DNA of 64,000 nucleotides from Heteronotia binoei (Eukaryota): assembly GCF_032191835.1 (NCBI RefSeq), contig NC_083227.1:37324001-37388000 (forward strand), in the 5' to 3' direction. Positions 17,464-47,997 of the stretch are shown here, piece after piece. Position 1 is the stretch's first letter. Each line of letters starts with the position of its first letter. The translations under genes were made by a program, and so were the position numbers. The notes below the pieces were generated by a model. That model was not told where the DNA came from. It saw only the letters and a program-made list of their open reading frames with translations, and did not search any database.

Positions 17464-17706
<243 letters not shown>

Positions 17707-24386: not shown

Positions 24387-24414
24387 AACAGTATTTCTTT
24401 CTTTATTTCTGCAG

Positions 24415-25709
24415 GTGACAATCAGAGGAATGAGGAGGATGGGGAACTGCATCCTCAATTGCCAAAGGAAGTGAAGAATGAAGACTTGAGAGGAAACTTC
24501 TACAATCAAGATGGGCCTAAGAGGGAGAAAGAAAGCCAGATGGTCAAGGAGAGGGGTAAACTCATTCTTTGCCAAGGGGGGGATTTCCAAGAAGTAATTC
24601 CCATGCCGAAGCAAACATACAAGTGCTTGGTGTGTGGAATGAACTTTTCAAATCAATCCCTGTATAAGATCCATTTTGGAATACACAGTGAAAAGAAGAC
24701 CCAAAAATGGCTGGAGTCTGGAAAGATCATAATTCGCACGGTAAAGCTTCTTACATATGAAAGAACACATCCAGGAGAGAAACCTTATAGTTGCTCAAAG
24801 TGTGGCAAGAGATTCTCAGAGAAATCAGGCCTTATTCGACACCAAAGAATTTGCTCTGCAGAGAAGCTGTTTATTTGCTCAGAGACTGGAACTGTAGGAA
24901 ATGGAAATACACCTTTTCTAAAGCCCAGTATAGTGAATGCACATAAATGCCTTTGGTGCAGAAAGTACTTCAAATACCGATCACAACTCCTTGCGCACCA
25001 AAGAATCCACACAAGGGAGAAGCCTTTTGAATGCTCAGAGTGTGGAAAAAGATTCATTCAGCGTGGCCATCTTAAAAAGCATCTAAGAACCCACACTGGA
25101 GAGAAGCCTTTTGAATGTTCAGAGTGTGGGAAGAAATTCAGTCAGAGTGGTGATCTTCAAAGACATCTAAGAACCCACACAGGAGAGAAGCCTTTTGAAT
25201 GTTCACAGTGTGGGAAGAAATTCAGTCAGAGTGGTGCTCTTCAAAAACATCTAAAAACCCACACAGGGGAAAAGCCTTTTGAATGTTCAGAGTGTGGAAA
25301 GAAATTCAGTCGCAGTGGCTACCTTCGAAAACATCTGAGAATCCACACAAGGAAGAAGCCTTCTGGATGCTCTGAGAATGGGAAGAGATTTGGTTGCACT
25401 GGCACTCTTCAAAAACATCTAAGAACTCATGAAGGGAAGAAGTTTTTTGAATGTTCAGAGTGTGGGAAGAGATTCAGTCACGGTGGCGATCTTAAAAAAC
25501 ATCTGAGAACCCACACAGGGGAGAAGCCTTTTGAATGCTCTGAGTGTGGGAAGAGATTTGGTCGCAATGGCTCTCTTCGAAGACATCTAGGAATTCACAC
25601 AAGGGAGAAGCCTTTTGAATGCTCTGAGTGTGGGAAGAGATACAGTTGTAGTGGCACTCTTCGAAGCCATCTAAGAATTCACACAGGGGAGAAGACTTTA
25701 AGAACATAA
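24415..25709 (+). CDS. ZNF-A terminal exon: about 9 canonical C2H2 fingers plus degenerate fingers; protein 676 aa (715 with the cassette exon)
   Basis: TCTGCAG|GTGAC acceptor in phase with KRAB-A. ORF 24366..25709 has TGEKP-linked fingers. The stop TAA 25707-25709 lies in CR1 tail sequence. Confidence 0.92.
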
Positions 25710-27284
25710 GAGAAGCCATGTTGGATCAGGCCAATGGCCCATCCAGTCCAACGCTCTGTCACACAGTGGCCAAAATTTTTATATATATATATATATATAC
25801 ACACATACACACACACACACATATATATACACACACTGTGGCTAATAGCCACTGATGGACCTCTGCTCCATATTTTTATCAACCCCCCTCTTGAAGCTGG
25901 CTATGCTTGTAGCTGCCACCACCTCCTGTAACAGTAAATTCCACATGTCAATCACCCTTTGGGTGAAGCAGTACCTCCTTTTATTCGTTCTAACCCGACT
26001 TCTCAGCAATTTCATTGAATGCCCACAAGTTCTTGTATTGTGAGAAAGGGAGAAAAGTACTTCTTTCTCTACCTTCTCCATCCCATGCATAATCTTGTAA
26101 ACCTCTATCATGTCACCCCGCAGTCGACGTTTCTCCAAGCTAAAGAGCCCCAAGCATTTTAACCTTTCTTCATAGGGAAAGTGTTCCAAACCTTTAATCA
26201 TTCTAGTTGCCCTTTCTGCATTTTTTCCAATGCTATAATATCCTTTTTGAGGTGCGGTGACCAGAATTGCACACATTATTCCAAATGAGACCGCACCATC
26301 GATTTATACAGGGGCATTATGATACTGGCTGATTTGTTTTCAATTCCCTTCCTAATAATTCCCAGCATGGCGTTGGCCTTTTTTATTGCAATCGCACACT
26401 ATCTTAACATTTTCAGTGAGTTATCTACCATTACTCCAAGATCTCTCTCTTGGTCAGTCTCTGCCAGTTCACACCCCATCAACTTGTATTTGTAGCTGGG
26501 ATTCTTGGTCCCAATGTGCATTACTTTGCACTTGGCCACATTGAGCCTCATCTGCCACGTTGACGCCCACTTACCCAGCCTCAACAGATCCCTTTGGAGT
26601 TCCTCACAATCCTCTCTGTTTCTCACCACCCTGAACAATTTAGTGTCATCTGCAAACTTGGCCACTTCACTGCTCACTCTCAACTCCAAATCATTTATGA
26701 ACGTTAAAGAGCATGGGACCCAGTACTGAGCCCTGCGGCACTCCACTGCTTACCGTCCTCCACTGCAAGACTGCCCATTTATACTCACTCTCTGCTTCCT
26801 ATTAATTAGCCAGTTTTTGATCCACAAGAGGACCTGTCCTTTTACGCCATGACTCTCAAGTTTACTAAGGAGCCTTTGATGAGGAACTTTATGAGAAGCT
26901 TTCTGGAAGTCAAGGTAAACAATATCTATCGGTCTCCTTTGTCCACATGTTTGTTCACCCCCTCAAAGAAATGTAACAGGTTAGTGAGGCAAGATCTGCC
27001 CTTACAGAACCCATGCTGAGTCTTCCTCAATAACTCGGTGGGGTAGGGCGGGATATAAATCGAATAAATATAATAAATAAACTCGTGTTCATCAATGTGC
27101 CTACTCATTCTGTCCTTGATAATAATGGTTTCTACCAACTTTCCAGGTATTGAAGTCAGACTGACTGGCCTGTAGTTTCCTGGATCTCCTCTGGAACCCT
27201 TTTTAAAGATGGGGGTGACATTTGCTACCTTACAGTCCTCAGGAACAGAAGCAGATTTCAATGAAAGGTTACGTATTTTTGTCA
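25700..27284 (-). mobile_element. 5'-truncated CR1 LINE inserted into the ZNF-A finger array
   Basis: RT pieces ANVTPIFKKGSRGDPGNYRPVSLTS, KFADDTKL and EERLKCLGLFSLEKRRLRGD. The 3' UTR matches 62575-62638 in reverse, and a (TA)n(CA)n microsatellite lies at about 25781-25836. Confidence 0.93.
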
Positions 27285-27375
27285 GAATGCTCCAAGTGAG
27301 GAAAGAGATTCAGTTGCAGTGGCCATCTTCAAAATCATTTAAGAACCCGCACAGGAGAGAAGCCTTTTGAATCCC
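27285..27375 (+). pseudogene. Orphaned, decayed last zinc finger of ZNF-A
   Basis: [29 protein letters not shown] directly after the CR1. The downstream 3' UTR (27410-27790) is homologous to the ZNF-B/B' 3' UTR (720-1105). Confidence 0.85.
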
Positions 27376-28519
27376 AGAGTCACACAAAGAGAAGCCATGG
27401 AACTGCTTAGCTCAGAGATGTTGAACTCGTTTGTTAAGAGGACCATAAGTTACACGAATGTCACTTTGTTGAAGGGCTATGTGTTCCATAGAATGTAATG
27501 CTGGGTACAGGAGATAAACTTCAGGAAGGACGCAGACATACCCAATTAACAATGTTATTTTTTTTCAAAATACAAACATTTGTAAAACATTAAGAATATT
27601 TCCTTTATTGAAGTCTTTGAAAACTGACCCCTCTTGCTTTGAATCATTGCATGAAAACCTGGAGTCAGTGTCTGAGCTGCAGTGATCTTGAGTATGTACT
27701 TTTGATTTATGGGCATTTATTACAGAATAGAGCTGTTCACAGACATACATTGTCCCAAAAATAGACAGGATTTTAGAAGCAAAAGCCTTATGTTGGGGGT
27801 AATCTGGTAAAATTTCCTAATGCCAACTTCAGAAAGATTTTCCTTCAATGCAGCATCACAGTGCTCCTCCACCTACCTGCAGTTTGTGGCATCCTTTCAT
27901 TGATAGGTGGGGAGATGAAAGAAAAGGGCTGTTCAGAAAAGAAGGTAAGGGGAATCCTGAGGGTGGGTGAAATTGTCACCTATTTTGAGAAGAAACATAA
28001 GATGCTCTTTAAAAGGCTGGGTATTGAGTTTATCTGTACTCCATCTGTCTCCCCAACAGAACTCTGGGTGAGTTATGATATTTTTTAAGATTGAGAGAAT
28101 GAAATAGGCCCAAGGTCACAAGCAAGTTTTACAGCAGAATGGCATTTGAACTTTGGTCTAATGCTGTGACTGCTGTCAGTTCAAATGATATAACAACATA
28201 CACCACAACAATGACTAGCTAAATTATTAAAACAAGTATTACATATTTTTAAAGTATAGATTTTTCATATGTTCACAGTGTGCACACACCATGCAATAAT
28301 GAAAGTGATTCAAATACCAAAAGACATTTAAAGTGCTCAGTGCTCATTAAATCGTCTACTAAATAGTCCAAAAACCATCAAAATGAAGCACTTTATGCCA
28401 CTATTAGAAGTCCTCCAGCACTATCGGGTGTTTTTATTTTTGAAGAATTCAGTGATTCTCTAATCTTCACAATGCTGGCATTATAGCTGGTAGTTCCAAA
28501 ATGCTGACAAAACAGATCT

Positions 28520-29785
28520 GATTGTTGGAAATATGTATCTGTTTTGTATGTCCTTTGCAATATTCCAAAGTTCCAGTCATTATAGGGTTAACACTGCCTG
28601 ATTCCAATTTGCTAAATACATGGATGAAATATAAGAAATATGGAGATGAGAGAAGACAGTTATGGATAGTGCCAGCTGAAGTAATAAAAACAACGGCTGA
28701 GATAGGTGAAAAAAAGTGGTTGTCATATAATCAATTATTAAAAATACAAAGTGGCAAAATAGAATTGAAAACTGCTGACGAGTTGAATAATAAATATGAT
28801 TGTTTCCAAATGCAACAAATAAAGAGCTTGGTGGATAACGATATCAAGGAATAAGAAAACAAATAAATGGAAAAAGTTCTGCTTGGAGATAATGAAAAAT
28901 TAATTTCAAAAATATATAAATTACTTTTGAAATGGTCTACGGAGGATGAAGTAGTGAAATCTCAAATGATTAAATGGGCAATTAATGTAAATAAAGAAAT
29001 ACAGATGGAAACTTCGGAATACTTGTGGAAGAATTCTATGAAGCTCTTGACGTGTCATAGTATTAAAGAGAACTGTTTTAAAATGATGTATAGGTGGTAT
29101 ATGACTCCTAAAAAATTGGCAAAGATGAACAATAAGATGCCAGACAGATGTTGGAAATGTAAAAAACATGAAGGTTCTTTCTACCATATGTGGTGGACTT
29201 GTGAAAGAGCAAAAAAGTATTGGCAGATGATTCAGCAAGAAATTTCTAAGATCTTGGGATATGAATTTAAGAAAGTTGCAGAGACTTTTCTATTGAGATT
29301 GCAAATGGAAAAATTTCCAAAAGAAGATAGAACTGTAATTTGGTACTTGCTTTCAGCTGCTAGGACATTATATGCGCAGTTGTGGAAGCAAGAAAAAATA
29401 CCAGAGAAATGGGATTGGATTATAAAAGTTATGACATGGAGTGAAATGGACAAATTAACAAGAATAGTAAGAGACTATGATTTAGAAGTTTTTAAGACAG
29501 AGTGGAAAAAGTTTAGAAGATATGTAGAAAAAGAGTGGAAAATAAAAGGACATTGGACTATTTTTGATAACGATTAAGTTTTAAAAAGAAGAATATAATT
29601 TTTTGTTTTAATAGTTAAGGATACCTCTACATATTTGCATTTTAAGTAAATAACACTGGCGGGAGTCAAGTAACGGGGGGAGGGGTGGGTAGAAAGTAAT
29701 ATATGGCGTAGATAAAAAGTTTTTAAAGATGTAAGAAATAGATTTATTACCATAAGTTACCAATAAAATTGTTTTACCTCAAAAA
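28520..29785 (+). mobile_element. 5'-truncated L1-clade LINE 3' fragment
   Basis: ORFs 28522..28854 and 28867..29577 with YRWYMTP...CWKCKKHEGSFYHMWWTC; AATAAA at about 29762. Ends approximate. Confidence 0.85.
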
Positions 29786-30894
29786 CCCCCCACTGTGCCC
29801 GATTCCCTATTGCCTGCATAACCTGGGAAGAAGACACTGCTGGCAATTAAGGTCTAGAAGAGGGAAAACCTGTTTTGTCTGTTTGGTCAGTCAGTCATGT
29901 GACTTCCTTTGTTCAGGCAGAGAGGTCAAGGAGGAGGAGGAAGTAGCCTCCATTAAGCACATGATCTTCTAGCGTAAGAATGTAGTTCTATAGTGTTTGT
30001 TATTTTCACCTCCCAGTACCCTTTCCCTGTAGAAATAAATATGGTTTTGCTTTTTCATGTTAAATGATTATTTGATCCAGTGATCCATCGCACTGTTTGA
30101 GATAAATAGAATTTCAAACAGAATTCCCTAACACTGATGACATGGAATCTTCATTATAATGTTGACACAGCAGCTAATATATGATACCTTCAGAGATAAC
30201 TACCAGCGATAGCTTCCAAAGCGCTGGAGGAACAGCAATGCTGATAAGGCAACTGATGTATACCTTCAAGGCACTAATCAGGATTAACTTCAAGGTGCTG
30301 TCAAAATAGCTATGTGATCCTTGGGCATTTTTCAATACATGTTTTGTCTGCCCACCTTCCTCTTGGCTCAGCTTAGGCCAATGAGCAGTCTATGTTTTCA
30401 TAACAAGAAGCATCCACCATTAACCCAATATAGATGGAACTCAGTCCTGCCAATTTCATCATCCACTGGCTTTATCTTGCCAGCTATAATGTCAGCATTG
30501 TGAAGAATAGAGAATTATCAAATTCTTAAAAAAAATAAAAAACACCAGGCACAGAATTATTGCTGTAAAGCTTCCAGGCCATTCATTGGGTGAACTCAAA
30601 AAGGAGCTCTTTTTTAATGCAAAGGAACTTGAAAAACAGAATAGAAAGGGAAAATGCTGAATTTGAAGTTATTGCAAAACTTGGAACAAACCAGGACTCA
30701 AAATGGATATTGTTTTCTTATTACATATGCTAAATTCATTCAATCCTTACATTGTAGTCTCACCAACAAGGGCTATACATTCTCTTTATTTTAGTGTATT
30801 TCTTAGTTGGAATAGTAACTTAGAATAGTGATTGCAATGTATTGCAATGAATGAGAATGGTATATCAGAATGCATTCCTTTGGTCTGGTAACAG

Positions 30895-31430
30895 AGGAGA
30901 CATAACATGGAGCTGGGCATGTTTAGCCTGGAGAGGAGGTGGCTAAGAGGTAATATCACCATCTTCAAGCACTTGAAGGGCTGTCATATAGAGGATGGTG
31001 TGGAATTGTTTTCTGTGACCCCAGAAGGTAGGACCAGAACCAATGGGTTGAAATTAAAAGAGTTTCTGGCTCAACATTAGGAAGAACTTCCTGACAGTTC
31101 CTCAGTGGAACAGGCTTCCTCAGGAGGTGGTGGTCTCTCCTTCCTTGGAGGTTTTTAAACAGAGGCTAGATGGCCATCTGACAGCAATGAGGATCCTGTG
31201 AATTTAGACGGAGGTATTTGTGAGTACCCAGTTTGCTGGAGGCGGGGGAGGCGTAGATGACTGGGGAAGGCACTGGCAAACCACCTCGTAAAATCTGCTG
31301 TGAAAACGTGATGCGACATCACCCCAGAGTCAGAAATGACTGGTGTTTGCACAGAGGAGTACCTTTTTTATTTGTGCAGGGGGTTGGACTAGATGACCCT
31401 GGACGTCCCTTCCGACTCTATGATTCACTA
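30895..31430 (+). mobile_element. CR1 3' fragment with a nested Sauria/Squam1-like SINE 3' half (about 31223..31368)
   Basis: ELGMFSLERRWLRG..., tail GGACTAGATGACC...TCTATGATTC. The nested sequence matches the 3' half of the SINE at 49234..49530. Confidence 0.75.
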
Positions 31431-31946
31431 CAAATCACCCCTCAAACGAAAAGATACGATCAGTTACCTGCACACTTGAGAGGAAATGGATGGAGATGGT
31501 TCAGAGAAGAAGCATCATATCTGGGTCTGCAGAGAACACCCATTTAGAAGTCCTATTAGAATGCTTTGCTTGGAACCACCCAATGCTTTGTGACTGGCCC
31601 CAGCCATCATGGCAGCCTCTATGGAAAGGCACCCACGGCCTATTTGCAAAATCCCTGAAGTGCCCACAGTTTTCACAAGGCAGCGGAGATGTGGAATAGC
31701 ATATTGACTTCATCCAAACAGGGCCCTGAATGGATATTTTTATTAGAACCAACAAGGCTTGCCAAGTCTAACAACTGTCCTTGTTGTCTGCTTGCACCTC
31801 AAAATCTGGCAAGAGGAAAATTGAAGGGGGCTGTGTGCACTGGCACACATCACTTCTGGTGAAAAAGTGAAAATGATGTCAGAAGGAGTGCTCTAGGATT
31901 TACCAGAAACTATGTCTTAACCATTGAATTTTGGTGAATCCGTAGC

Positions 31947-32272
31947 TTGGGGTGGCCAAACTTGCTTAACATAAGGGCGACATAGAATAAATGTCAGATA
32001 TTTGAGAGCCACAAGACATGAATGTCAGATGTTTGAAAGCCGGCAGGCAGGCAGGAAAGGTGGAAAAAAAGCAAATACATGGAGGGTGGGAGAGGTGGAA
32101 AGAAAGAAACTTTAAATGCATTCTCCAAGCTGCTGGCTGGCTTGGAGAAGTAATTTAAAAAGCCAAATGCCTCCTCCAAACTGTCCAACGGAGTGGGGGA
32201 GGGCCTCAAGAGCCACACAATTTGTGTGAAAGAGCCACATGTGGCTCCTGAGCTGCAGTTTGGCCACCCCTG
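31947..32272 (+). mobile_element. Charlie-type hAT MITE
   Basis: TIRs GGGGTGGCCAAAC/GTTTGGCCACCCCTG; the body matches 8803..9108. Confidence 0.8.
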
Positions 32273-32629
32273 CCTTAGTCTGTCTTGAGAACCTGACTGG
32301 AGAGGCCAGCTTGCCTGGTTTGGTGGGCAACCTGCCTCCTTCAGCCTTGGTCCCTTGATAGGGGCAGTGGGGGAGGACAGTATCCCACAAAGCCATGCCA
32401 TCACTTCAGGCTGTGTAACTGGATGTGAAGCTATTATGTTGGGTATGCTCTGGTATCCCCCAGAAATTCTATGGTTTTTGCCCCGCAGCATGGTGAGGTC
32501 ACTCCCGTTAGGCAGCAAGAAATCACATTGCAACATTCCTGGATGCCCTCCCCCCCCCCCCCCCCGAGACTGTCTCTGCTGCATCTCTTGATGGAGGCTG
32601 TGGGGTACATCAGGCACAGCAGGCTGGTT

Positions 32630-32845
32630 TTTCTGTGCTTTAATAAAGACGTAACTTAGTTAATGAGTCCTTTATTTTTATGCGCTCCATTCTAGACCAG
32701 ACACAGTAGAAATAGGAATCCATTTCCATTTCATTTTTCTGTGCTTTAATGAAGAAGTAACTTAGTGAGTTAATGAGTCCTTTATTTTTGATGCGCTCTA
32801 TTCTAGACGAGACAGTAGAAATAGGAATCCATTTCCATCTCATTT
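32630..32845. repeat. Two-copy tandem duplication, unit about 107 bp
   Basis: TTTTCTGTGCTTTAAT...GAGTCCTTTATTTT..TGCGCTC.ATTCTAGAC..AGTAGAAATAGGAATCCATTTCCAT occurs twice. Confidence 0.85.
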
Positions 32846-34179
32846 ATTAGCTTCTATGACCAAAGGTCTTAAGCTCAATCAGGATGTAACGATCTAATGT
32901 ACTAGGATGGATGGAGATGCAGGAAGCATGGTAGCAAGATAGCAAAGCTGTTAGCCCACAAGAAGGAAGATTTCCTGGGAGTTGCCATTTATGTCCTGAC
33001 CTGGGTGGCCTAGACTAGCCTGATCTCATCAGATTTTGGAAGCTAAGTAGGGTCAGCCAGCCCTGGTTAGAATTTTGTATTTTTACCTGTGTGTGTGTGT
33101 GTGCATGTGTGCGTGCACACACACACCTGGAACTCATGGTGACCTCTGGTGACTGACCCCTACTGGGGCCCTGTAGGATGTTCAGAGAGGTGGCTGAACA
33201 GAGCCTGCCTCTGCCCTCCTGACTGCTGGTATTCTAAGGAGGTCTCCCATTCAAGTACTTGCCTGAATTGGCTTGCCTGGGCTATTCAGGTCAGTATTTG
33301 GATGGGAGACCACTACAGAATTCCAGATTTGCTATGGAGAGGAAGGCAATGGCAAACCACTTCTGTAGTCTCTTGCCTTGAAAATTTTACGAGGTCACTA
33401 TCAGTTTGCAGTCCTTTACAGGCATTCAGAGTAATTTACGCATCAAAGTAATAGCAGCAGAGCAACAGAAGGGAAGGATGTACAGGCCCTGGCCTATCTA
33501 TCTCTCTGGCTCTCTAGTTTCTCCCTCTGAAGTTTTCTCCCTTCTAACTTAGACCTAAGCCCCAATGAGGAAAGAATGTTTGCAATATCTTTGCCTCCAT
33601 CACTCCATTTGTAGCCTTTCCCACTCCCACAACATTCATTCATGAACATGGCATTTTTCACAGGCAGAAAGAAATATGAGTTGTGATCTTTCCTTTACCT
33701 TAGCCCTCCATAGCTCTAACCAGAGTGCATAACCATGGCAGGGTTAGGGTTCCAGGTCTTACCTGGCAGCTGGCAGGGGATCTTCCTTGAGCGCATGAAA
33801 TGATGATGTCATCCAGAGGAGTCATTATCACGCCAGGCATGTCACAGGGGGATGCTCTAGCACTTTGGAAAAAACTATGGTTGAGTTTTCCCCCCAAGTG
33901 CTAGAGTATCCCGTTCCCCCCCCCACACATACACAATGTGCCCAGCACGCTAACATCACTTCTGGGTGACATCATCATGCCAGGCACATCGCAGCATGCT
34001 GGTGCTTTTCTTGGGCACCCTTGCCAGCCAGTTGTGTGGTGGTGGGTTGGAGGCACCGAAATTGGGGGAAACCCCACCCCCATCAGGAGGCTGGGAACCC
34101 TAGGCAGGATAGTGCTTTCCCCCACTTCTCGAGACCAGTCTTGATTTTTTTCCCTCCTCACAGCTTATTTCTGTACTAT

Positions 34180-34303
34180 TTACACCAGAAGTGCTTCCGT
34201 CTCACAGATCCATTTGGTGACAGCGCTACAAGCTTCAGAAACCACTCTGTTTCCTTTCAGCATCCCACAGCTTTTTGCTTGAATGGTACCCGTCACTTGC
34301 AAC
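34180..34303 (-). CDS. C-type lectin-like NK receptor (KLRB1/KLRF-like), last CTLD exon
   Basis: CATTCTGCAG| acceptor; (L)LQVTGTIQAKSCGMLKGNRVVSEACSAVTKWICETEALLV*; phase 2 matches the preceding exon. Confidence 0.9.
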
Positions 34304-34944
34304 CTGCAGAATGAAGGCAAAAGTCAACCACATATTTGACATAAAGTAGCCACACCACTTTAACAGGACTTAAGTGTATAGACACAGATGGATCAGGCTA
34401 GCCAGCCTTGCCAGATCTTGGAAGTTAAGCCCTGGCCCTTGTCAGTATTTGGAGGGGAAACCAACAAGGAAGTCCAGAATCCCTATGCAGAGGCAGGCAA
34501 TGACAAATCTAGGCTGATCCTACATTAAGCAGGAGGGGTTGGACTAGACGGCCTGTATGGCCCCTTCCAATTCTGTGACTATGATTCTATAAACCACCTC
34601 TGAACATCTCACCTTGGAAACCCTACAGGGTAACCATAAGTTGGAGCAACTTGACAGCACTTTCCACCACCAAAGTATAGAAACGCCCACACTGCTGGTG
34701 AAATCTAAGCAGTCTTTTTGCTTTCTCTTCATGTTTCCTGTCTCAGGCATAGATATTGGGCATGGCCAGAGACTCTGTGAACAGGGAGGGGCATTCACAG
34801 CAGCAAAAGACTGCCCACATGGCCCACATTTCTATGAAGGTTCCTCTGCCCTCTCACAGGCTCCCTTCTCTCATGAAGTGCCAACAGAGTGGTTTGGGCT
34901 GGCTTTAAAAAGTTTGTAGTTATTTTGTTACAGGCTATATTTCT

Positions 34945-35150
34945 GTAGCCCTGACCTGGAATGCCCAGGCTAGCCCAGTCTTATCAGATCTTGGAAACTA
35001 AGCAAGGCCAGTTCTGGCTAGTATTTGGAAGGGAGACCCCCCCAAGGAATACCAGGGTCATTACACAGAGGTAGGCAATGGCAAACCCCCTCTGAATGTC
35101 TCTTGTCTTGAAAACCATATGGGGTCAGCATAAGTCAGCTCTGACATGAC
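34945..35150 (+). mobile_element. 5S rRNA-derived SINE (other degraded copies at about 33000-33080, 33150-33400, 34390-34510, 45230-45420, 45520-45650)
   Basis: 5S-like core CAGATCTTGGAAACTAAGCAAGG...TAGTATTTGGAAGGGAGACC followed by a non-5S tail GAGGTAGGCAATGGCAAACC; too diverged to be a 5S gene. Confidence 0.65.
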
Positions 35151-35308
35151 TGGGGTTTGGAATCGCTATAGCAAACTAGTGTCTTAAAAAAAGAAGCTGG
35201 CAAAAAGCCTGTCGACATTACAGCAGGGTAAAATAGTGGCTTCAAGGGGATGATGGCAGTAAAATGGCTCTGATGTGGGCAGAAGGTTAAAAACAATGCA
35301 CACTTTTC

Positions 35309-35490
35309 CAGGGCTCTTTTTGTAGCAGGAACTCCTTTGCATATCAGGCTACACCCCCCTGATGTAGCCAATCCTCCAAGAGCTTACAGGGCTCTTCTTA
35401 CAGGGCGTAATATAAGCTTTTGGAGGGCTGACTACATCAGGGCTGTGGGGCCTAATATGCAAAGGAGTTCCTGCTACAAAAAAAGCTCTG
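35309..35490. mobile_element. Palindromic hAT-like MITE related to 4615..4807
   Basis: CAGGGCTCTTTTTGTAGCAGGAACTCCTTTGCATAT...ATATGCAAAGGAGTTCCTGCTACAAAAAAAGCTCTG; arms of about 60 bp; no clear TSD. Confidence 0.7.
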
Positions 35491-35997
35491 ATTTCCAATC
35501 AGACTTTGTGATAACCTGATTGGATTGCAGTCTTTCTGGAAAGATCATAAAGAAGCAAGGGGAAATCTGGGAAGTGGTCAATTGGAGGAGGACGTGGTAT
35601 GGATGCCCTGCACCGTTCCAGTTGGGAAGCCCATGGACAAAAGAACCATATGGAAATTACCTGCCTTGGATAATTTTAGGCTAAGTTCCTCAAGGTAGAG
35701 TACAATGGTCTTGTACTCTGCAAAGTTCTGTGTACATTGACAGCTGAATAATTACAGCAATGTGGTTTATAAATCTCACGGCTAAGCTGCCATATAAGAA
35801 CAGTGTTTCTGAAATGAGGGCCATTTCAAACATTACTTTCTTAAAGTGTTCCCATATGCAGAATGCACGTATGCCTGCCATACTCTGTAATATGCAAGAA
35901 GTTTCCTTGCTTCCGTTTCACAGCATACAGATGCAGTGGTGGGGAGACCCTAAGGTATTTCTAACCCAAATGCTTGTGAACAGTAAGAAATACTCAC

Positions 35998-36110
35998 AGT
36001 GTGCTATTTAATGAGGAACCATCTATCCAGGTCCATTTTCCTGCTGGGGAAGTGGTGGTTAGTCCAATCCACAGTAACTGTGCTCCATTGGTAATGCTCT
36101 GTATGAAGTC
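35998..36110 (-). CDS. C-type lectin-like NK receptor, middle CTLD exon (WIGL)
   Basis: TGACAG|GACTTC...ACACT|GTGAGT; DFIQSITNGAQLLWIGLTTTSPAGKWTWIDGSSLNST; phase 0 to 2. Confidence 0.92.
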
Positions 36111-37271
36111 CTGTCAGTAACACAAGAGGTGTGCAGATTTTAGAATATTTCATTTTAAAATATAGACCTTGCCTTTCTACCCACAGCACATCCCCCAAGG
36201 CAGCTGGTTTTGAAGTCCTGTGGATGCCAGCTAAGTTACTGCTCCTTAATAGGAGATGCTCCTGATAGCAGATGCAATCCTGCACTGAATACAAAAATAG
36301 ATCAGGAAGACAATATATGTGGCTCTGTATTTGGCGTGCTTCTGCTGTGCTTTGTATGAGCCTCAGCATGTCCATCCTTCTAAGCAGTAGCCCTTCCACC
36401 CCACTATGGTGGAAGGGTGCCATTGCATCAACGCATGATGTCATTTCTAGAGTGAGCCTGAAAGTGATGTTATGCTGCTCTAAAACTCAGTGGAAATTCT
36501 GTGGCATTAGCACAGAGCTTCTGCTGAATCTTAGAGCAGAGTGATATGACTTCCTGATTTATCCAGGAAATAACATCATGCTACCAACATGTTTGTGATT
36601 TTTAATTTTTTTTTTCTCCTGCTGACCTACCAAGTGGCAGCTGGCAGCAGGGGGCGGGGAAAGCAGTAGGAGACCTGGCAACCCAATTCCTTTGGCTTAC
36701 TATGGAGTTTTCTGAGATGGTCAGAGCATCACCAATGGCACTGGCATCACATCTAGGCTTTGGGGCAGGTATGACAACACCTGTTTTTTGACCTCATTCT
36801 AGCCTGGGCCTTTTCTCTCGCCACTTTGAGGAGCAAGGGCAAGAGGCCTCCTATTATAAGTGGGCAATGATACCCCTAGCCCCCTAGCAGAATTACAAAG
36901 GTATCTGCACACTTGAAAAGGTTGGGGACCCATTCCCTAAAGTGAGCTGTGGAGTAGTTTCTCTTTAGAGGGATGCCTACCAAGATACAGTGGATGCAGC
37001 TGAGCAGCAGCGCAACAGTGTGGAGGCACCAAACGTGGGAGTGGTTGTGGTTGAGAATGTACTGTCTTCCCAGGAAATACCACCAAAGACACCCTGCTGC
37101 TCTCAGACACAATTTAGCTTAAAGAAAAAAGGACATAGACAGTATGTGGAAGTTCGCCTATACAGACTTATATCTGGGAGTCTGTAGTGACCATATAATA
37201 AGCTATATAAGCTATATAATAATACCAGGTTGATCTGAACCCATAGAACAAAGTTTGAATTCACGGACACC

Positions 37272-37365
37272 TTTAAGACCAGCAAAGTTTTACTCAAGGT
37301 ATAAGTGCTTGCACAGAAAAGCTTATAACCTTGAATAGAACTTTGTTGGTCTTAAAGATACCGCT
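37272..37365. repeat. Hairpin repeat (Penelope-derived-like)
   Basis: CACCTTTAAGACCAGCAAAGTTTTACTCAAGGTATAAG is inverted against CTTATAACCTTGAATAGAACTTTGTTGGTCTTAAAGATAC. Confidence 0.6.
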
Positions 37366-37719
37366 GAATTAAAACTTCATTCTACACAATAATACAAAAG
37401 GGTAAAAGTTGCAAAACTGCTCCACTATAATCTGAATAATTTGTTAAGGTCTCTAAATTCAGATTTTCACGATACACAGTACCCCCCCCCCCCTTGAGGA
37501 TGGCTGGAGATCTCCTGGAATTACAGCTGATCCCCAGGTGACAGAGATTGGTTCACATGGGGGAAAATGGCAGCTCTGAAGAGTGGACTCTTATTGAATT
37601 ATACCCTGCAGAGGTCCTACCCCGCCCACCTAAGGTTCCACCCCCACCCCCCAATCTCCAGGTATTTCTCAATCCCAGAGCTGGCAGCCCTGAGGATGAA
37701 GAAGTCGGTTTGTATTTAC

Positions 37720-37874
37720 CAGTTCCTTTTGTCCCTCTATCACCACAATTTGAGAGTGTCTTTCTGTGCAGTCCTGCCGACTCTGGTTCCAGTTTTGTTT
37801 TTCTTTGGAGGTCCAGTAGCATTTGTCCTCATGAAGGAGCCAGTTTTCTTGGCAAAGTCTGCACTGGGAATTCT
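37720..37874 (-). CDS. C-type lectin-like NK receptor, first CTLD exon
   Basis: TTTTTCTTTTAG|AGAAT...GAACTG|GTAAAT; NSQCRLCQENWLLHEDKCYWTSKEKQNWNQSRQDCTERHSQIVVIEGQKEL; phase 1 to 0, as in group V CTLD genes. Confidence 0.92.
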
Positions 37875-38020
37875 CTAAAAGAAAAACAAACAGCTTGTAT
37901 AAGAATGTAGTTGGTCTCCAGGATCAGTTCTCTGTGCTGCAGCTTTTTCTGCACTTGTAGCTGGCCATTTGTTAACTATAACTACTCATAAACCAGCTCA
38001 AGAAATTGAAGGCTTTCTTT

Positions 38021-38318
38021 GAAGAAGAAGAAGAAGATGATGAAGATATTGGATTTATATCCTGCCCTCCACTCTGAATCTCAGAGTCTCAGAGTGGCTC
38101 ACAATCTCCTTTATCTTTCTCCTCCCAAAACAGACACCCTGTGAGGTGGGTGGGGCTGAGAGGACTCTCACAGCAGCTGCCCTTTCAAGGACAACCTCTG
38201 CCAGAGCTATGGCTGACCCAAGGCCATTCCAGCAGGTGCAAGTAGAGGAGTGGGGAATCAAATCCGGTTCTCCCAGATAAGAGTCCACGCACTTAACCAC
38301 TACAGCAAACTGGCTCTC
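38021..38318 (-). mobile_element. Squam3-like tRNA SINE
   Basis: Same family as 1541..1821; (TTC)n tail. Confidence 0.85.
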
Positions 38319-39588
38319 TTTGATTTAGCTGTCTTTGTAAGAATAACAATAATATGCCTCAAATTCTAAGTGCTTGACAAATGCAAAAATAAAATATAAC
38401 CAGGATGCAGGCTTACAACTAAATGCTGTTTAAGTGGAACTTTTTCTTAATTTCTAAACAAACTTATATAGTGAGTGGGTGGCTTTCTGGGCTCTCACAA
38501 ACTTAAAATTAGCCAGCATTGATCAGTACTTTATTGGTAAATGCCCAGACAAAAACCTGAGGATCAGGAATAGCATGAAAGCAAGAGGACTAGATTTTGT
38601 AAGAACTGACAGCCAGTGAGGTGTAGTGGGTTAGAGCAGGGGGCTCCAATGTGGTACCCAGGGGTCTCTTGGTGCCCCTGACACCTTTTCTGACATCCAC
38701 CAAGCGTTTTGAGAAAGTGGGCAGGGCCAAGTGGGGCTTTTATCAGCAGGGCTTCTGATTGGCTGTGCAGATTCAAAACAGAACATGACTTCAATATCAG
38801 CTGTCAACACAACATGAGGATTTTCACAGTGTGACTGCTAGTAAGCTGCATGTAAGCAAGAAAATAGTTATAAACAATATGTTCATTTTAAAAGGCATTC
38901 TGTTAAGCAGAGCTTCTGCCTGAAATGTTGAAGAGTTGCTATTAGAGTTATGTGTAACTGGGGCTTTTTTTGAGCAGGAATGCACAGGAACCAAGTTCTG
39001 GTTGGCTTGGCATCGGGGGCGTGGCCAAAAATGCAAATGAGTTCCTGTTGGGAGTCCCCAAACCGGGGAATGGGCAGAATATAAATAAACAAATAATAAT
39101 AATAATAGCAGCCTTGCATGAAACAATAGTGACACCAGGGGGTGTGGGCTAACATGCAAATGAATTCCTGTGTGTAACTATATTTCCTGACACTGGGTGA
39201 TTGGCCGTGCCGCCTGCAGGAGCTATTTCATGGTCAGAGCTCTCAGCTCCAGCTGCCTCACAGAGGGAAAGGAGATTGTAAGGTGCTCTGAGACTTCTTC
39301 GGGTAGTGAAGGGCAGGGTATAAATCCAATCTCTTCTCTTCTCCAGAAATCAGAAGGCAAACAAGACTTGGCCTATGATCCAACCAAAATCTAACACTTC
39401 TAGTTCCCATGTTAGAGTAAAATGAAGCATATTTAAACCATTCTGGTTGAGAATCAATGGAACTTTAAAAATGCTTAGCATTGTGGGACTATACCCATAC
39501 AGGGCCGGCTCACCCACTAGGTAAACTAGGTGGTTGCGCTGAATTGGGCTCTCCCCCTTCCAGGTGCCCATGACAAATGCCTTCTTTG

Positions 39589-40096
39589 TAGGGTTGCCAA
39601 CCCCCAGGTGGGAGCAGGGGATCCCCCGGTTTGGAGACCCTCCCCCCGCTTCAGGGTCATCAGAAAGCGGGGGGAGGGGAGGGAAATGTCTGCTGGGAAC
39701 TCTGTTATTCCCTATGGAGATTTATTCCCATAGAAAATCATGGAGAATTGATCTGCAGGTATCTGGGGCTCTGGGGGGGCTGTTTTTTGGGGAAGAGACA
39801 CCAAATTTTCAGTATAGCATCTAGTGCCTCTCCCCAAAATACCCCCCAAGTTTCAAAAAGTTTGGACCAGGGGGTCCAATTCTGTGAGCACCAAAAGAAG
39901 GTGCCCCTATCTTTCATTATTTCCTATGGAAGGAAGGAATTGAAAAGGTGTGCCGTCCCTTTAGATGTGATGGCCCGAACTCCCTTTGGAGTTCAATTAT
40001 GCTTGTCACAGCCTTGATCTTGGCTCCACCCCTAATGTCTCCTGGCTCCACCCCCAAAGTCCCCAGATATTTCTTGAATTGGACTTGGCAACCCTA
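39589..40096 (+). mobile_element. Non-autonomous DNA element with TAGGGTTGCCAA TIRs (hAT-like)
   Basis: TIRs TAGGGTTGCCAA/TTGGCAACCCTA; closely matches 41413..41942; no TSD detected. Confidence 0.75.
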
Positions 40097-41412
40097 CAGT
40101 GAACTGAAGGAAGAGGCAGAGTTCCAGAGCCTTCATTCTGCCCAGAGAGGATTTTTTTGGCGGGTACACTGAGCTGATAACAGCTGCAGTTCTGGGGGAA
40201 GCAAGCTCTTACTTCTTCCAAGTGACTACTAATGTGCCCAGGAAATGAGTCCTTAAAAAAAAAAAACCCTTCATTGCTTGCACCTCAGCAACTGGTGTAC
40301 AAGGGGTTGCTCCTGTATCAGAACATAGAAGATTTTTTTGACATTGCAGCAAATGCTGGTGCCATTTATCTTGTAGGATTTGCCTACTACCTTTTTCAAG
40401 AGGGCTTAGCTTCAGTGCAGTGCCTTCCAGAAATAGGGTTGCCAGCTCCAGGTTGCAAAATACTTGGAGATTTTGGGGGTGGAACTTCCCAAAGTGGCCA
40501 TTTGCTCCAGGTGAACTGATCTGTGTTGCCTGGAGATCAATTGTAAACTCAGAAGATCCCCAGTTGGAGGTGAGAGAGAGAAAAAAACCCTAGGTTTCCG
40601 TGACCAACCAGTCTCAAAAATCTCACAAAGTACATTGTGGGGGTGATTTTCTGATTGTCCTTCCCTACCCAGATTTTTTTGTTGATACTTAATTTGATTG
40701 TGTGACTATTTTTATAGGTTTTAGAGTTAAAATTTACCTCATATCCCAGAATTTTTTTTAAAAAATGCTTTTGTATAGAGTGATATGTATATGAATTTGC
40801 TCTGGCCCCTTCCTCTCCCTCCCTTAGTTTGTAAACCTGGAGCTATTTCCCCTTTGTTGGTAGATTCCATGGATCTGGGAACAAGGGGGTAGTAGATGTT
40901 CTTCCTTCTGTGGTCTGGGATAGATTCCAAAACATTCTGTAGGGGGAATTTTTTGGATCAAACTTGAGATGTATTTTTTTTTTTTTTACAAATGTTGACC
41001 TTACCTACCTTGATTCTTTGCTGATATTGCCCTCGACTGTACAAGCTTCTGTTTTTATGATTTTTAAAATTAATTTTACTATTAAAAATTTACTCCACAT
41101 CCCAGAATAATTTGACCTTTCCCTCTCCCCACCCTTTGTTGTGGAGTGATATGTATGTGGTATGTTCTAAATAAATGTTATACATTAAAAAACTTACAAA
41201 TAATGTAAATACATGAAGATATATTCAGTCTTCAAAATATAATCACTTGTGAATGGAATTCCATAGAAAAGGTATCCTAACTCATATACAAAGGTACCCC
41301 TCAATATAAAAAAAATGGAGTCCAAAATGGTATTCAAACAATCCAGAAGGGAGTCCATGGTTCATATCAACTTGAATAAACAGTTTTCAATCTTCAGTGG
41401 GTGCCTCTGTAT

Positions 41413-41942
41413 TAGGGTTGCCAATCCCCAGGTGGGGGCAGGGGATCCCCCGGTTTGGAGACCCTCCCCCCCGCTTCAGGGTTGTCAGAAAGCGGGGGGA
41501 GGGGAGGGAAATATCTGCTGGGAACTCTATTATTCCCTATGGAGATTTATTCCCATAGAAAATCATGGAGAATTGATCTGCGGGTATCTGGGGCTCTGGG
41601 GGGCTGTTTTTTGGGGTAAAGGCACCAAATTTTCAGTATAGCATCTAATGCCTCTCTCCAAAATACCCTCCAAGTTTCAAAAAGATTGGACCAGGGGGTC
41701 CAATTCTATGAGCTCGAAAGGAAGGTGCCCCTATCCTTCATGATTTCCTATGGAAGGAAGGAATTGAAAAGGTGTGCTGTCCCTTTAAATGTGATGGCCA
41801 GAACTCCCTTTGGAGTTCAATGATGCTTGTCACAGCCTTGATCTTGGCTCCACCCCTAATGTCTCCTGGCTCCACCCCCAAAGTCTCCTGGCTCCACCCC
41901 CAAAGTCCCCAGATATTTCTTGAATTGGACTTGGCAACCCTA
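41413..41942 (+). mobile_element. Second copy of the TAGGGTTGCCAA-TIR element
   Basis: Colinear with 39589..40096, with one extra GTCTCCTGGCTCCACCCCCAAA unit; flanks differ. Confidence 0.75.
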
Positions 41943-42965
41943 GCTGAACCCCATTGAAAGAGAGGAACATAATGTCCTTCATGACCTCTGCTTTTTCAAG
42001 TAGTCCTACTTCTGTCTTTCCACAGATCAGTTTCAATTTGTTCACTGTTAGCCATTTAACCACTGCAGCTGGGAAGCAGTTGAGGACCTCTGCTGCATCA
42101 CTACCTCTACCTGCTCCTGATCCCCTCAGCAGCCCTTGTGCCCTGGCCTGAAGAGGCTTCTCTGCTCTTCCTTCTGCTGGCTGCTTGGGCAGAACTATTC
42201 CCCAGCCCTTCCAGCCTGTTGAGGAATTCCCTGCAATGATTAAGCCCTTCCCAGTTGCTTTGTTCTCGGTGTCACTTTATCTTGAGATGCACCTATTACA
42301 CAGATTGATCCCCAGAAATCAGAGGCAAAGCTTATATGTTAAAATTAAGTTTCTAGTTCAGAAAGAGGGTAAACGAGGTATCACATGCCTAAGCAACAGT
42401 AGACATCAGTCAGACTACCAGGTTATTAACCAATTATATGTTTTCCTGCCAAAAGGTCTATGTTGGAAGTTGTAGCAAAGTTCCGTATTTCTATAAAGGT
42501 ATTGTGTAAACTCAAATCAGAGTCCTTGAGCCTACTTCTCCTGGACCCATGCAGCCAAATAAATTCTGTTTTTTTCTGTAAAGGAGTCTCTGATTTGGGG
42601 TGCAGTTGTTTTCAGATATAACCTTTTGGGTGACCCAGTGTGCCCAAGAAAATCCAAGACACATAACAGCCAAAACAGATTTTTCAAAAGCCAAATAAAG
42701 ATGTTTGTTTTTCCTGAACGACCAAGCAAGCACATCTGAAAAAACTTGACACTTAATATAACACATTAATTCTGATCCACATACTTCAACACAGACACTT
42801 CTTCTGATCCATTTTGGTGTCTCTTGACCAGGATCAGCGATATAACTCAATTCTCTTTTGGTTTCTTTCTGCCCTTTTTCATAGATATCTTTCCATCTCC
42901 CTCTTCATAGGCAAGTGAATAAGAGTGTCTTTCCACAAGCAAGGGCAACCCAAGAGAAAGGGAAG

Positions 42966-43388
42966 ATGGAAGAGGAAAACCCAAAAGGTCCTGGAACTGG
43001 CAAGAAATTGAGGAAAGGTCCCCTTCCCATCCAAGCAGGGAATGATGTTGAATTTGAGGAAAGATCTGTGCCAGAAATCTTGGTTCAGGACACGATGACT
43101 AAAGATATACACAGCCAATGCTTCCGGCAGTTCTGTTACCATGAGGTTGATGGACCCCGAGAGTTTTGCAGCCAGCTGCATGGACTGTGCAATCACTGGC
43201 TGAAGCCGGAGAGGAACACCAAGAAGCAGATGCTGGACCTGGTGATCCTAGAGCAGTTCCTGGCTGCCTTGCCGAAGGAAATGCAGCGCTGGGTCAGAGG
43301 CTGTGAGCCAGAGACCAGTTCCCAGGCGGTGGCCCTGGCTGAAGGTTTCCTCCTGAGTCAGGCAGAGGAGAAGAGGGAGGCAGAGCAG
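42966..43388 (+). CDS. ZNF-B coding exon 1: SCAN domain
   Basis: Acceptor CTTCATAG at 42910, ATG at 42966, SCAN motif [30 protein letters not shown]...; donor CAG|GTGAGG; 423 nt like ZNF-A. Confidence 0.93.
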
Positions 43389-43559
43389 GTGAGGGTCGGG
43401 ATCCATCCCCTCAGCTTGTTCCATTCCTTCTCTTACCTCTGCCCCTTGCTGTTGTTTCAGATGTGGGAATAATGTGGGGATAACTGGTGAAGATGGAAGC
43501 ATTCAAGCATTGACCTTATCCTAAAGCTTCCTATTGGATATTTCTCTGAGTACGTGTTA

Positions 43560-44620
43560 ACTGTCATCAAGTGGCTTCCGACCTATGGTGACCTATGTAT
43601 TAACGTCCTCCCAAATGTCTTATTGTTAAGAGCCTTGCTCAGGTTTTACAAACTGATGACCATGGCTTCCTTGATTTGATTTCCTTCTTTTTCTGTCGCC
43701 TTCAACTTTTCTAGTATTACTGTCTTTTCTAGTGAAACTTGTTTTCTCATAATATCACCAATGTACAATAGTCTCATTTTAGTCATTTTAGCTTCTGGGG
43801 AGAGTTCAGGTTTGATTTGATCTAGAATCCACTGATTTGTTGTTTTGGCTGTCCATGATATCTATAAAAACTCTCCTCCAACCCCACATTTCAAAAAAAT
43901 CAACTTTCTCCGTGCCAGCTTTCTTCATTGTCCAGCTCTCACACCCACACATAGTAATAGGCATGGCATGAATTATCTTGATCTTGGTCACCAGTCACAC
44001 ATTGTAGCTCCTTAGCTATACTTCCCAGCCTCGATCTCCTTCTGGTTTCTTGTCTGCAGTCTCCCTTTTGTTTGACAATGGTGTAAGGAAGAGATCTGCT
44101 TAGAGTCAGCTGATAAGTTAATGCAAGTTACTGACCTAAGTTTTTTAGTTTGCCAGAGCTGCTGAGTCATCCTAATTAACAGCTGGGGTGGAGGAAGCAA
44201 AGGGAGCCAGTGGGTCAACTTTTTTCTCTGTTTCCATGATAAAGCCAAGCAGAAGGAAGAGTTGACCCACTGGTTCCCTTTGCCTCCTCCAATTGTTACT
44301 GATTCTTTTGCCAATTTTCATTCCACCTTCATCTAAATCTAATCCAGTTTCCTTATAATATGTTCTGCATATAGATCAGAAAGACCTAGAGATAAAATGT
44401 CATTGTCTGACACCTTTGTCATTTGGAAACCATTCTGTTTCTCCATATTCTGTCCTAACAGTGGCTCTTGTCCAGAGTACAGGTTGTGCTTCAAAGCAAT
44501 CCGTTGTTGTGGCACACCTATTTCTTTTTAAACCAGGCATAGATTTCCATGACCCACACAGTCAAGCTTTGCTTTAATCTGTGAAACACAAGCTGGTTTT
44601 CCTGTGAAATTCTCTTGCAT
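43560..44620 (-). mobile_element. RTE/BovB LINE fragment
   Basis: Homologous to 13450..14218 at the paralogous position; includes YGCESW-like AITMCGCESWTMKKA. Confidence 0.7.
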
Positions 44621-44787
44621 GCTCCATGACCCACCTAAATTTGCAATATGATCTTAAGTACCTTGTCCTTTTTGGAATCCAGCTGAGATGGTGGATGGAG
44701 AGATGAAGAGACTGGGAGGGGGTCAGGATCCATGTCCTCGACTGATTCCGTCCCTTCTCTTACCTGTGTCCCTTGGTGTTCTTTCAG

Positions 44788-44902
44788 ATGTGGGGACGAT
44801 CTCTGAAGATGGAAGCAAAATCCTTTGAGGGAGAAGGAGCTCCAACAGAGGAAAGAAAGAGGGCACCATTGCAGGAGCATGCCCAAGATTCCCTGTCAAG
44901 TG
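44788..44902 (+). CDS. ZNF-B coding exon 2 (115 nt)
   Basis: CTTTCAG|ATGTGG...TCAAGTG|GTAAGG; MWGRSLKMEAKSFEGEGAPTEERKRAPLQEHAQDSLSS. Confidence 0.85.
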
Positions 44903-46198
44903 GTAAGGGTGCCTCCTGCTCAGAGTGGATGAGGGTAGTTAGTCAAGTTGTTGGGCAGAAGATTCAGGACAGGATAAAAGGGGAATACTTTTGGAGTCTA
45001 CACAGAATTGAGTTCTGGGACATAATGCCATAGCAGGTAGTGATGCCCTTTCAGTTTAAGGGGGAGTAGATGGAATCATGGAAGGAAATCCCGTTCTTAT
45101 TCACATTAATTAAAATATGCATATCTCACTATCCTTCCATTAGAGGGTCTCAGGATGGCTCAAAAAAAGAAATGAAGAAAAATCTGGGTACAGCTGTTAG
45201 CCATGGTGAATAAAGGGACTGTCCACATTCCCCAGACCTGGATGGGTGAGGCTAGCCCATTCTCTTCAGATCTCAACCTGGATTAGTTCCTGCATGGGAG
45301 ACCACCAAAGCAGTCCAGGGTTTGTATGTAGAGGCAGAGAATGGCATTACCATATCTGAATCTCTCTTGTCTCAAATAACTTGATTCACTATAAGTTAGC
45401 TGTGACTGATGCACCCTTGAAAACTCCTTGGCTAGGGGCCAATAATTTCAGTTCTGTGCCCTGGTTTAGAGGCTTTCCATAGGCATCTGGCAAGCCACAG
45501 TGTGAAAGAGGATACTGAACTAGGGATGCTGAGTTCAGCCTGGTTAGTTCCTGCATGGGAGACCACCAAAGAAGTCCAAGGGTTGCTATGCAGAGGCAGA
45601 CAATGGCTTACCACCTCTGAATGTCTCTTGCCTGGCATTCCCATGGGCTTCAAGGGTGGAGCATGGGGCGGACGTGATGTCATGTCAGTGTCTCGTCTGG
45701 CCTAATACCTGGATGTGAAGTCAGAGCATCAGGAGATGCAGTGGAAAGGCAGCAAGCACTCTAATATTTCCACAGCTTGGCTGACGCTTCAAAATCACAT
45801 CTGGGTTTTGGGCTGGATGTGACAGCAGTATGCCATGCAACATGATTTCCAGTCCCCACTATTTCTCCTGCCAGTCCAGACTCCAGGACAGGTGGGAGGG
45901 CCCAGCAGGCAGGAGAATGGCATGCCTGGGCCTTTGGTCTCATCCAGCAAGGATGCTGCAGCCTTTGGGGCTCCAGGGTTCCCAGGGGACATTTGAAATA
46001 TTACAGAAGCATTGGCAGCATCTATAACACCCTGAGTCTCATGCGTACCTCTCTCACACCTCCTAAAAGTCATTACACATTTCCTTTAGTGTTAAAAAAA
46101 GCACTGGGAACACTGATGTGTGAAGGAGAATTCAAAGAAGCAACCACAGTAGGAACTTGAAGTTAACACTTAACCTTCCCAGTTTTTCTCCCTTGCAG

Positions 46199-46269
46199 GC
46201 AGTAAAGAGATGTTGCCAGTCCTTCATCTTTGCAGAGGAGTGGAAACGGCTGCTTCATGTCTGGCCCAG
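46199..46269 (+). CDS. ZNF-B coding exon 3 (71 nt)
   Basis: CTTGCAG|GCAGT...GCCCAG|GTAGGA. Confidence 0.85.
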
Positions 46270-46466
46270 GTAGGAGAGAAGAATGGGGGGTAGTCAGCTT
46301 TCCCCTCCTTTCTCAAGGAGGTTATTGGTCTTGCTGACTGAGGGGAGAGAGGTTCTGAACCCCACCCTCTTTACACAGATTAACTCTACATTATGCTCCC
46401 TTCCAGAATGCCCCCGTCCAGTGTGCAGAATCAGAGAGTTGGAAGGGACCTCCAGGGTCATCTCCA

Positions 46467-46740
46467 GAGAGCCAGTTTGGTGTAGTGGTTAAATGTGCGG
46501 ACTCTTATCTGGGAGAACCGGGTTTGATTCCTCACTCCTCCACTTGCAGCTGCTGGGATGGCCTTGGGTCAGCCATAGCTCTGGCAGAGGTTGTCCTTGA
46601 AAGGGCAGCTGCTGTTAGAGCCCTCTTAGCCCCACCCACCTCACAGGGTGTCTGTTGTGGGGGAGGAAGATAAAGGAGATTGTGAGCTGCTCTGAGACTC
46701 TGAGTGGAGGGCGGAATATAAATCCAATGTCGTTGTCTTC
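46467..46740 (+). mobile_element. Squam3-like tRNA SINE inside a CR1 tail fragment
   Basis: GAGAGCCAGTTTGGTGTAGTGG head; it splits GGAAGGGACCTCCAGGGTCATCT|AGTCCAGCCCC (unsplit form at about 8645-8690). Confidence 0.85.
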
Positions 46741-47063
46741 TAGTCCAGCCCCCTACACAATGTAGGAAATTCACAAATCTCCCCCAACACACATACATCT
46801 TCAGTGTCCCCTGTTCCATGCCCAGAAGATGGCAAAAACTTGCCAAAGTGCCCTGGAGAAAAATTGCTTACTGACCCCAAAGTGGCAATCATCATTTCCT
46901 TGGGCATTTAAGAAAAGTCCACAGGAACTAAGCACTGGTGCAACCCTTTCTGCCCTCCTTTTCATGATCTGCCTAATTCACAGAATCAGCATTGCTGTCA
47001 GATGGCCATTGAGCCTTCAAAGAAGGAGAGCCCACCACCTCCTGAGGAAGCATGTTTCACTGA

Positions 47064-47324
<261 letters not shown>

Positions 47325-47997
47325 TGAAAAGCAACATGTGGTTGAGGGCTACTCAGCTACCTCCCCCCTTCTGGGGATCTCAAAGTGGTGACGTGGCAGA
47401 GGAAACAGTGAGCCTGCATGGCCAGTGGTGTGGCCATCATCCAAGCCAGAGAGGGTGTCCTGGCTTGAGGCCTAGGTGGGACTGAGAGGCCGTCAGGAAA
47501 ACTCTGGAAGACACCCACTCCCAATTTCTCAGTTGCCAACCTTTACAACTTGCTGCAAGGAACTTGGCAATTCCCAAGGTTCTGGCAGGGTAGGGTCCCA
47601 AGGGTCACCAGGATTTGGACTCATTTGGAGCTCTTGCCCTGTTAACTAATAACACCTGCCATGCAGCTTGCATTGCCTGGAGGGGACCATTGGAGATTGC
47701 TTTCCAAGTTTTTTTTTTCTTCTTTTCCTGATCTCCAGTACAGCAATGTTAACTAGGTTTTTAGACCTTGATTAGGTTGGGAGTATTAGAAAAGGAAGGT
47801 TTCTTGTAAAGGAAAACACCCAACAGCTTTCCTTGACTGGAAGCACACTTAAGATGAATGATGGCTGTTTCTCCAGGTGCTTGCATGCCGCTTCAGGCCA
47901 GACCAGCCATCTGAGGATATTCAAGACAGTAAGATTCATAAGTTTAAAGAAAAGTTTTAGCCAGAAAATAGTGAATTTTTTGTTTGTTTGTTTGTGT

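Follow-up and report, generated by a model that had tools for sequence, protein, structure and literature searches.

An intact lectin-like domain in a probable 5'-truncated duplicate of a KLRB1/KLRF-type receptor gene of the gecko Heteronotia binoei

Three exons on the minus strand of a 64-kb stretch of Heteronotia binoei DNA (64,000 nucleotides, called here the window) encode a C-type lectin-like domain of the natural killer (NK) receptor type. They correspond to the 3'-terminal part, encoding the lectin-like domain, of a squamate type II NK receptor gene of the KLRB1/KLRF type with six exons. The window copy appears to be a partial duplicate of this gene, 5'-truncated within the intron that separates the stalk exon from the lectin exons. 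Since neither a membrane anchor nor a signal sequence is found in its predicted product, the copy would be unable to act as a surface NK receptor, and we favor, with some reservation, the view that it is a recently disabled relic. The first-pass annotation of this DNA had proposed a hidden, functional immune receptor gene; this proposal is not supported, the locus being annotated and the membrane-anchor part that defines the family being absent from the copy.

The exon structure had been read correctly from the sequence. The reading frame and every splice site are intact on the minus strand, with AG acceptors and GT donors, and the phases are compatible, with phase 1 at the entry into exon a, phase 0 between exons a and b, and phase 2 between exons b and c, from where the frame runs to the stop. 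The translations are those of the peptide reported earlier, and the nearest canonical minus-strand poly(A) hexamer lies at 32848-32843, approximately 1.3 kb downstream of exon c. The exons were translated and searched singly, and the whole domain was tested on two public proteins with identical exon translations (P0151 and P0001, described below). Exon b alone clears the Pfam Lectin_C (PF00059) threshold (24.9 vs 22.6 bits), exons a and c give no useful Pfam match singly, and both public proteins score 65-66 bits over profile positions 2-107 of 107. In sequence searches of the PDB, the exons are collinear on KLRF1 (8qmd_C), exon a covering residues 50-97, exon b residues 100-134 and exon c residues 140-170. 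Exon a matches KLRF2 (best, E = 4.7e-10), NKG2D and KLRF1; exon b matches KLRF1 and NKR-P1 chains at E of approximately 3e-4 (best NK-type 2.6e-4), these NK-type chains ranking behind the multi-domain Lymphocyte antigen 75 and the yolk-sac IgY receptor; exon c matches NKR-P1B (KLRB1) at E = 2.2e-5, then KLRF1. For exons a and c, KLRF2, KLRF1 and KLRB1 thus lead the single-domain matches, and collinear lectin matches of this kind, exon by exon, could not be due to chance.

No calcium- or sugar-binding motif of the EPN/QPD or WND kind is present in the three translations. The WIGL motif announced by the first-pass annotation is found in exon b; its count of six cysteines has to be corrected to seven, namely the six canonical ones and an extra one four residues into exon a. 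The exon borders are identical in another H. binoei paralogue (P0025, locus L003) and in the orthologue of the leopard gecko Eublepharis macularius (locus L004), which places the window exons within the three-exon split of the family. The structural matches and the Lectin_C scores are in agreement with the earlier assignment, and the predicted domain is a genuine, uninterrupted group V (KLRB1/KLRF-like) C-type lectin-like domain.

The gene is not hidden. A search of exon a against 1.84 billion representative proteins returned P0001 (149 amino acids, XP_060094728.1), 100% identical over residues 21-71, with a cluster mate, P0151 (189 amino acids, XP_060094726.1). Both contain all three exon translations exactly, and both carry the name "killer cell lectin-like receptor subfamily F member 1" in the automatic RefSeq annotation of H. 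binoei. Window positions 54733..24180 show 100% identity to L002, the locus of P0151, which identifies the window as CM063329.1:37,324,001-37,388,000 (GCA_032191835.1) and the lectin exons as those of the XP_060094726.1 gene. The lectin gene is therefore already known as a member of a well-known family with a RefSeq entry.

The locus of P0001 (L001) provides the reference for what the window copy has lost. It lies 87 kb from the window copy, on the same strand, and aligns to window positions 39588..23511 at approximately 97%; upstream of 39588 the homology ends, and the first 9,983 bases of L001 have no counterpart anywhere in the window. Three unannotated 5' exons were found in L001, encoding the cytoplasmic tail, a transmembrane segment of approximately 21 mostly hydrophobic residues, and a stalk that matches the Eublepharis stalk (E = 3e-23). 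The hydrophobic run of the transmembrane exon includes a glutamate (LAVEIGC...). As the three exons are homologous to those of the Eublepharis, Podarcis (250 amino acids) and Tiliqua (236 amino acids) orthologues, the parent would be a standard six-exon type II receptor gene.

None of these exons was recovered in the window. Searches of the 64 kb by tblastn and blastn with the paralogue exons and with the N-termini of four orthologues and of the paralogue P0025 (tblastn queries P0025, P0007, P0155, P0153 and P0152, plus the Eublepharis transmembrane and stalk frames) gave chance-level matches only, and a hydrophobicity scan of the minus strand over 37875-50000 found no transmembrane-like exon. 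The only candidates of the scan, two overlapping frames near 39100, were rejected as low-complexity repeat. A complete receptor gene is thus not what the window contains, since the cytoplasmic, transmembrane and stalk exons missing here are present in the paralogue and in the orthologues.

The homology to L001 stops exactly at the edge (39588) of a repeat resembling a miniature inverted-repeat transposable element (MITE). This MITE-like family has a length of approximately 510-540 bp, and a second copy in direct orientation, about 94% identical to the first, lies further upstream in the window (Table 1). L001 is without the repeat at the corresponding site, and beyond it the window sequence regains no homology with L001. 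Since the break coincides with the terminus of a repeat without counterpart in the paralogue, the duplication probably preceded the truncation, an order of events that would also explain why the lectin exons still look selected.

Table 1. Positions of the exons, repeats and neighboring genes discussed in the text (window coordinates unless a locus is given).
Feature	Position	Strand	Details
Lectin exon a	37874-37720	-	155 nt; enters in phase 1; acceptor ttttag, donor gtaaat; putative exon 4 of the six-exon parent
Lectin exon b	36110-35998	-	113 nt; acceptor gacag, donor gtgagt; WIGL motif
Lectin exon c	34303-34180	-	124 nt; acceptor ctgcag; TAA stop at 34182-34180
MITE-like repeat	39589-40096		termini TAGGGTTGCCAA...TTGGCAACCCTA; at the end of L001 homology
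MITE-like repeat, second copy	41402-41942		direct orientation
MITE-like repeat, further copy	L003:5141-5675
L001 cytoplasmic exon	L001:~2925-2999		unannotated; region L001:2925-8677 is CM063329.1 ~37.452-37.458 Mb
L001 transmembrane exon	L001:7488-7583		unannotated; intact; acceptor ag, donor GTGAGT
L001 stalk exon	L001:8501-8677		unannotated
Cryptic exon 0	39571-39514	-	ATG at 39571; donor G/GTGAGC; within former intron 3 of the parent; by tblastn
XP_060094726.1 coding exon 1	44733-44662	-	24 codons; donor AAG/gtactt; within an intron of zinc-finger gene B, opposite strand
XP_060094726.1 coding exon 2	43199-43094	-	antisense of the gene B SCAN exon; by tblastn of P0151
Zinc-finger gene A	12805-25709	+	SCAN exon 12805-13386; finger array 24366-25709
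Zinc-finger gene B	42915-54336	+	SCAN exon 42915-43472 (E = 7e-36); finger array 52006-54336

From these data we infer the following history. A segment with a SCAN-KRAB zinc-finger gene and the lectin gene would have been duplicated inside the zinc-finger cluster of CM063329.1. The window copy would then have had all sequence upstream of the MITE-like repeat replaced, losing the cytoplasmic, transmembrane and stalk exons as well as the promoter. The remnant would be an intact, spliceable lectin-domain frame without anchor or signal, to which RefSeq would have added makeshift 5' exons. Such a copy is an ordinary birth-and-death product of NK lectin genes.

The selection acting on the lectin exons was estimated with the exons analysed separately and split codons left out. 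Between the window and Eublepharis, the nonsynonymous rate (dN) is 0.095 and the synonymous rate (dS) 0.344, a ratio of 0.28, and the same dN/dS of 0.28 was obtained against the H. binoei paralogue P0025. These values, well below 1, point to the lectin domain as clearly a selected coding sequence within this lineage. Between the window and L001, the lectin exons show two synonymous and no nonsynonymous differences in 384-392 nt (128 codons; dS 0.025, near the non-coding rate; dN/dS 0). The two synonymous differences lie at 37825 and 36096, where the minus strand of the window has C and that of the paralogue (CM063329.1, ~37.445 Mb) has T in each case; polarisation with Eublepharis assigns one synonymous change to each branch. 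In the non-exon DNA aligned between the two copies, 185 of 6,273 sites differ (2.95%). Two copies approximately 3% apart in their non-coding DNA do not fit the very recent gene that had been suggested. When 155 + 113 + 124 non-exon columns were drawn at random, two differences or fewer were obtained with P = 0.001, a value that concerns both branches together.

Several of these comparisons weigh against a dead copy. Every 392-column window of non-exon sequence holds at least six differences; the expectation corrected for CpG sites is 11.6 differences against the 2 observed, by which a CpG bias as the source of the low exon divergence was ruled out; differences restart 14-53 bp beyond every exon edge; and the splice sites of the lectin exons are intact. 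On the window branch alone, one synonymous and no nonsynonymous change are found, with a probability of 0.02 for one change or fewer and 0.01 for no nonsynonymous change. The evidence for continuing selection on the truncated copy itself is suggestive but modest, and a truncation much younger than the duplication accounts equally for the conservation.

These same observations form the strongest argument for a different reading, in which the copy is a working truncated gene with a new 5' end (e.g., the two 5' exons of XP_060094726.1) that produces a membrane-less lectin protein, or a regulatory transcript, under selection. No nonsynonymous change since the duplication, where approximately 4.6 would be expected on the window branch (P ~0.01), a conservation restricted to the exons, an intact frame with its splice sites, and the existence of a full RefSeq coding model are all in agreement with it. 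In contrast, neither a signal nor a membrane segment is encoded at the modelled N-terminus, folding in the cytosol is not expected of a domain with three disulfide bonds, the SCAN exon to which the 5' exons are antisense codes for protein itself, and the first exon of the paralogue's model is a different one that evolves neutrally. We regard a working gene of this kind as possible, and clearly less probable than the disabled relic. Its most far-reaching version, an anchor-less and promoter-less duplicate kept for millions of years by purifying selection and expressed from a 5' end antisense to a SCAN exon, hence a new chimeric non-membrane lectin gene, seems to us unlikely.

The two 5' exons of XP_060094726.1 encode an N-terminus of 60 residues without any hydrophobic or membrane segment. 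XP_060094728.1 starts with the paralogous copy of a cryptic exon that lies upstream of the lectin exons (exon 0 in Table 1), and the modelled N-termini of the two proteins are unrelated, neither having a membrane segment. Between the window and L001, exon 0 shows 3 differences in 57 nt, 2 of them nonsynonymous, a neutral rate. Exon 0 was also considered as a degenerate stalk exon, which was rejected: it is neutral and lies in the intron that both copies share, whereas the paralogue has its true stalk exon another 1.3 kb upstream. A different, neutrally evolving first exon in the paralogue's model suggests model building rather than transcript evidence. Furthermore, antisense open frames in zinc-finger gene A (14806-14859 and 12976-13086) are 83% and 70% identical, respectively, to the pair of 5' exons in the lectin model, suggesting that the frames of these 5' exons are a by-product of zinc-finger gene sequence. 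The two RefSeq N-termini are not trustworthy, and are model artefacts or at best unproven.

A second alternative is that the gene is complete, its 5' exons lying outside the window, having diverged past detection, or having been lost by an assembly error in the repetitive cassette. Constraint at the level of the exons would be expected of a complete gene, and a repeated cassette is prone to collapse or misjoin in assembly. However, exons 1-3 of the paralogue lie within 9 kb of exon a and are absent over 26 kb upstream in the window; at approximately 3% divergence, blastn and tblastn would easily detect them; the window contains no N runs; and the junction at the repeat terminus is clean. We consider a complete gene improbable. 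Gene conversion from the complete paralogue, rather than selection on the window copy, could in principle maintain the similarity of the exons, two copies of approximately 97% identity, separated by 87 kb and in the same orientation, being a good substrate, but its tracts would need to match the outlines of three exons one by one, while differences return 14-53 bp from their edges and the introns are approximately 3% divergent, and conversion would have no reason to prefer exons in a neutral copy, so that we give this explanation very little credit.

Among known genes, the closest relatives form a squamate KLRB1/KLRF-like orthogroup, with members in Podarcis lilfordi (P0155, 250 amino acids), Tiliqua scincoides (KLRB1B-like, P0153), Eublepharis (XP_054832447.1, P0007) and Gekko japonicus (KLRF1-like, P0152). 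The window copy shares with them a lectin domain 62-81% identical to P0001 (BLASTP), the three-exon split and the C-terminal end. In contrast, the cytoplasmic tail, the transmembrane segment and the stalk with its cysteines, which full-length squamate members possess, are all absent from the window copy; XP_060094726.1 and XP_060094728.1 omit the true transmembrane and stalk exons, which are present at the second locus, L001. Mammalian NKR-P1 (KLRB1), NKp80 (KLRF1) and NKp65 (KLRF2) and chicken B-NK are group V lectins without calcium and sugar motifs, as is the window domain. Mammalian KLRB1/KLRF proteins are its best matches among solved structures, a likeness of family that does not assign the window copy to one mammalian gene. 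For these mammalian and chicken proteins, which are complete type II receptors, ligands of the CLEC2 family are known, whereas the window copy has no membrane anchor. Partial-duplicate and unprocessed pseudogene copies are known in KLR/Ly49 clusters under birth-and-death evolution. Like them, the window copy is a segmental duplicate without 5' exons near a lectin cluster; unlike them, it carries no disabling mutation in its retained exons and shows statistical evidence of constraint. Chromosome 2 of the green anole carries KLRB1 and CLEC2 genes together with genes of the natural killer gene complex and of the major histocompatibility complex (PMC5002281). Our literature search found no paper on the present gene or on gecko KLR genes.

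The main significance of these results is one of clean-up, the supposed hidden immune receptor being an annotated member of a well-known family. They also show that in the RefSeq models of this orthogroup in geckos (both H. binoei copies, Eublepharis and Gekko) the true transmembrane and stalk exons are left out or exchanged for others, and counts of squamate NK receptors made from such annotations will be distorted. If the window copy proved to be expressed, it would offer a small case of a partial duplicate staying in use, or a truncation dated by its breakpoint at a repeat edge.

The genomic setting of the lectin exons is as first described, on the minus strand between two SCAN zinc-finger genes that are both on the plus strand. 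The annotated product of gene A has 639 amino acids with SCAN, KRAB and C2H2 domains. The intact SCAN exon of gene B is not part of its RefSeq model (788 amino acids), which begins only at 44809; the gene B model and the lectin model are probably entangled. The ends of the window repeat each other with an offset of approximately 53.8 kb, positions 1-6629 matching 53803-60442 at 97.2% and positions 6627-7667 matching 62966-64000 at 98.8%, with a 2.5-kb insertion in the right-hand copy at 60442-62966. The similarity of this divergence to that of the lectin copies suggests one burst of cassette duplication. The complete KLRB1-like gene encoding P0025 (249 amino acids) and more lectin genes are located at L003, approximately 370 kb away, and the Eublepharis orthologue likewise adjoins another lectin gene.

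In the other geckos, the model of the Eublepharis protein (XP_054832447.1, 190 amino acids) leaves out the cytoplasmic and transmembrane exons, although the two are found open in the DNA upstream (L004:2206-2283 and 6023-6121), and the Gekko model likewise skips a transmembrane exon found in the DNA. The N-terminal part of P0152, the Gekko japonicus protein, matches L001:2932-3003 at 75% identity, in another frame of the cytoplasmic exon region, and L001:7987-8043 at 74%, between the transmembrane and stalk exons; these matches could reflect an alternative isoform that skips the transmembrane exon, or merely conserved intron sequence.

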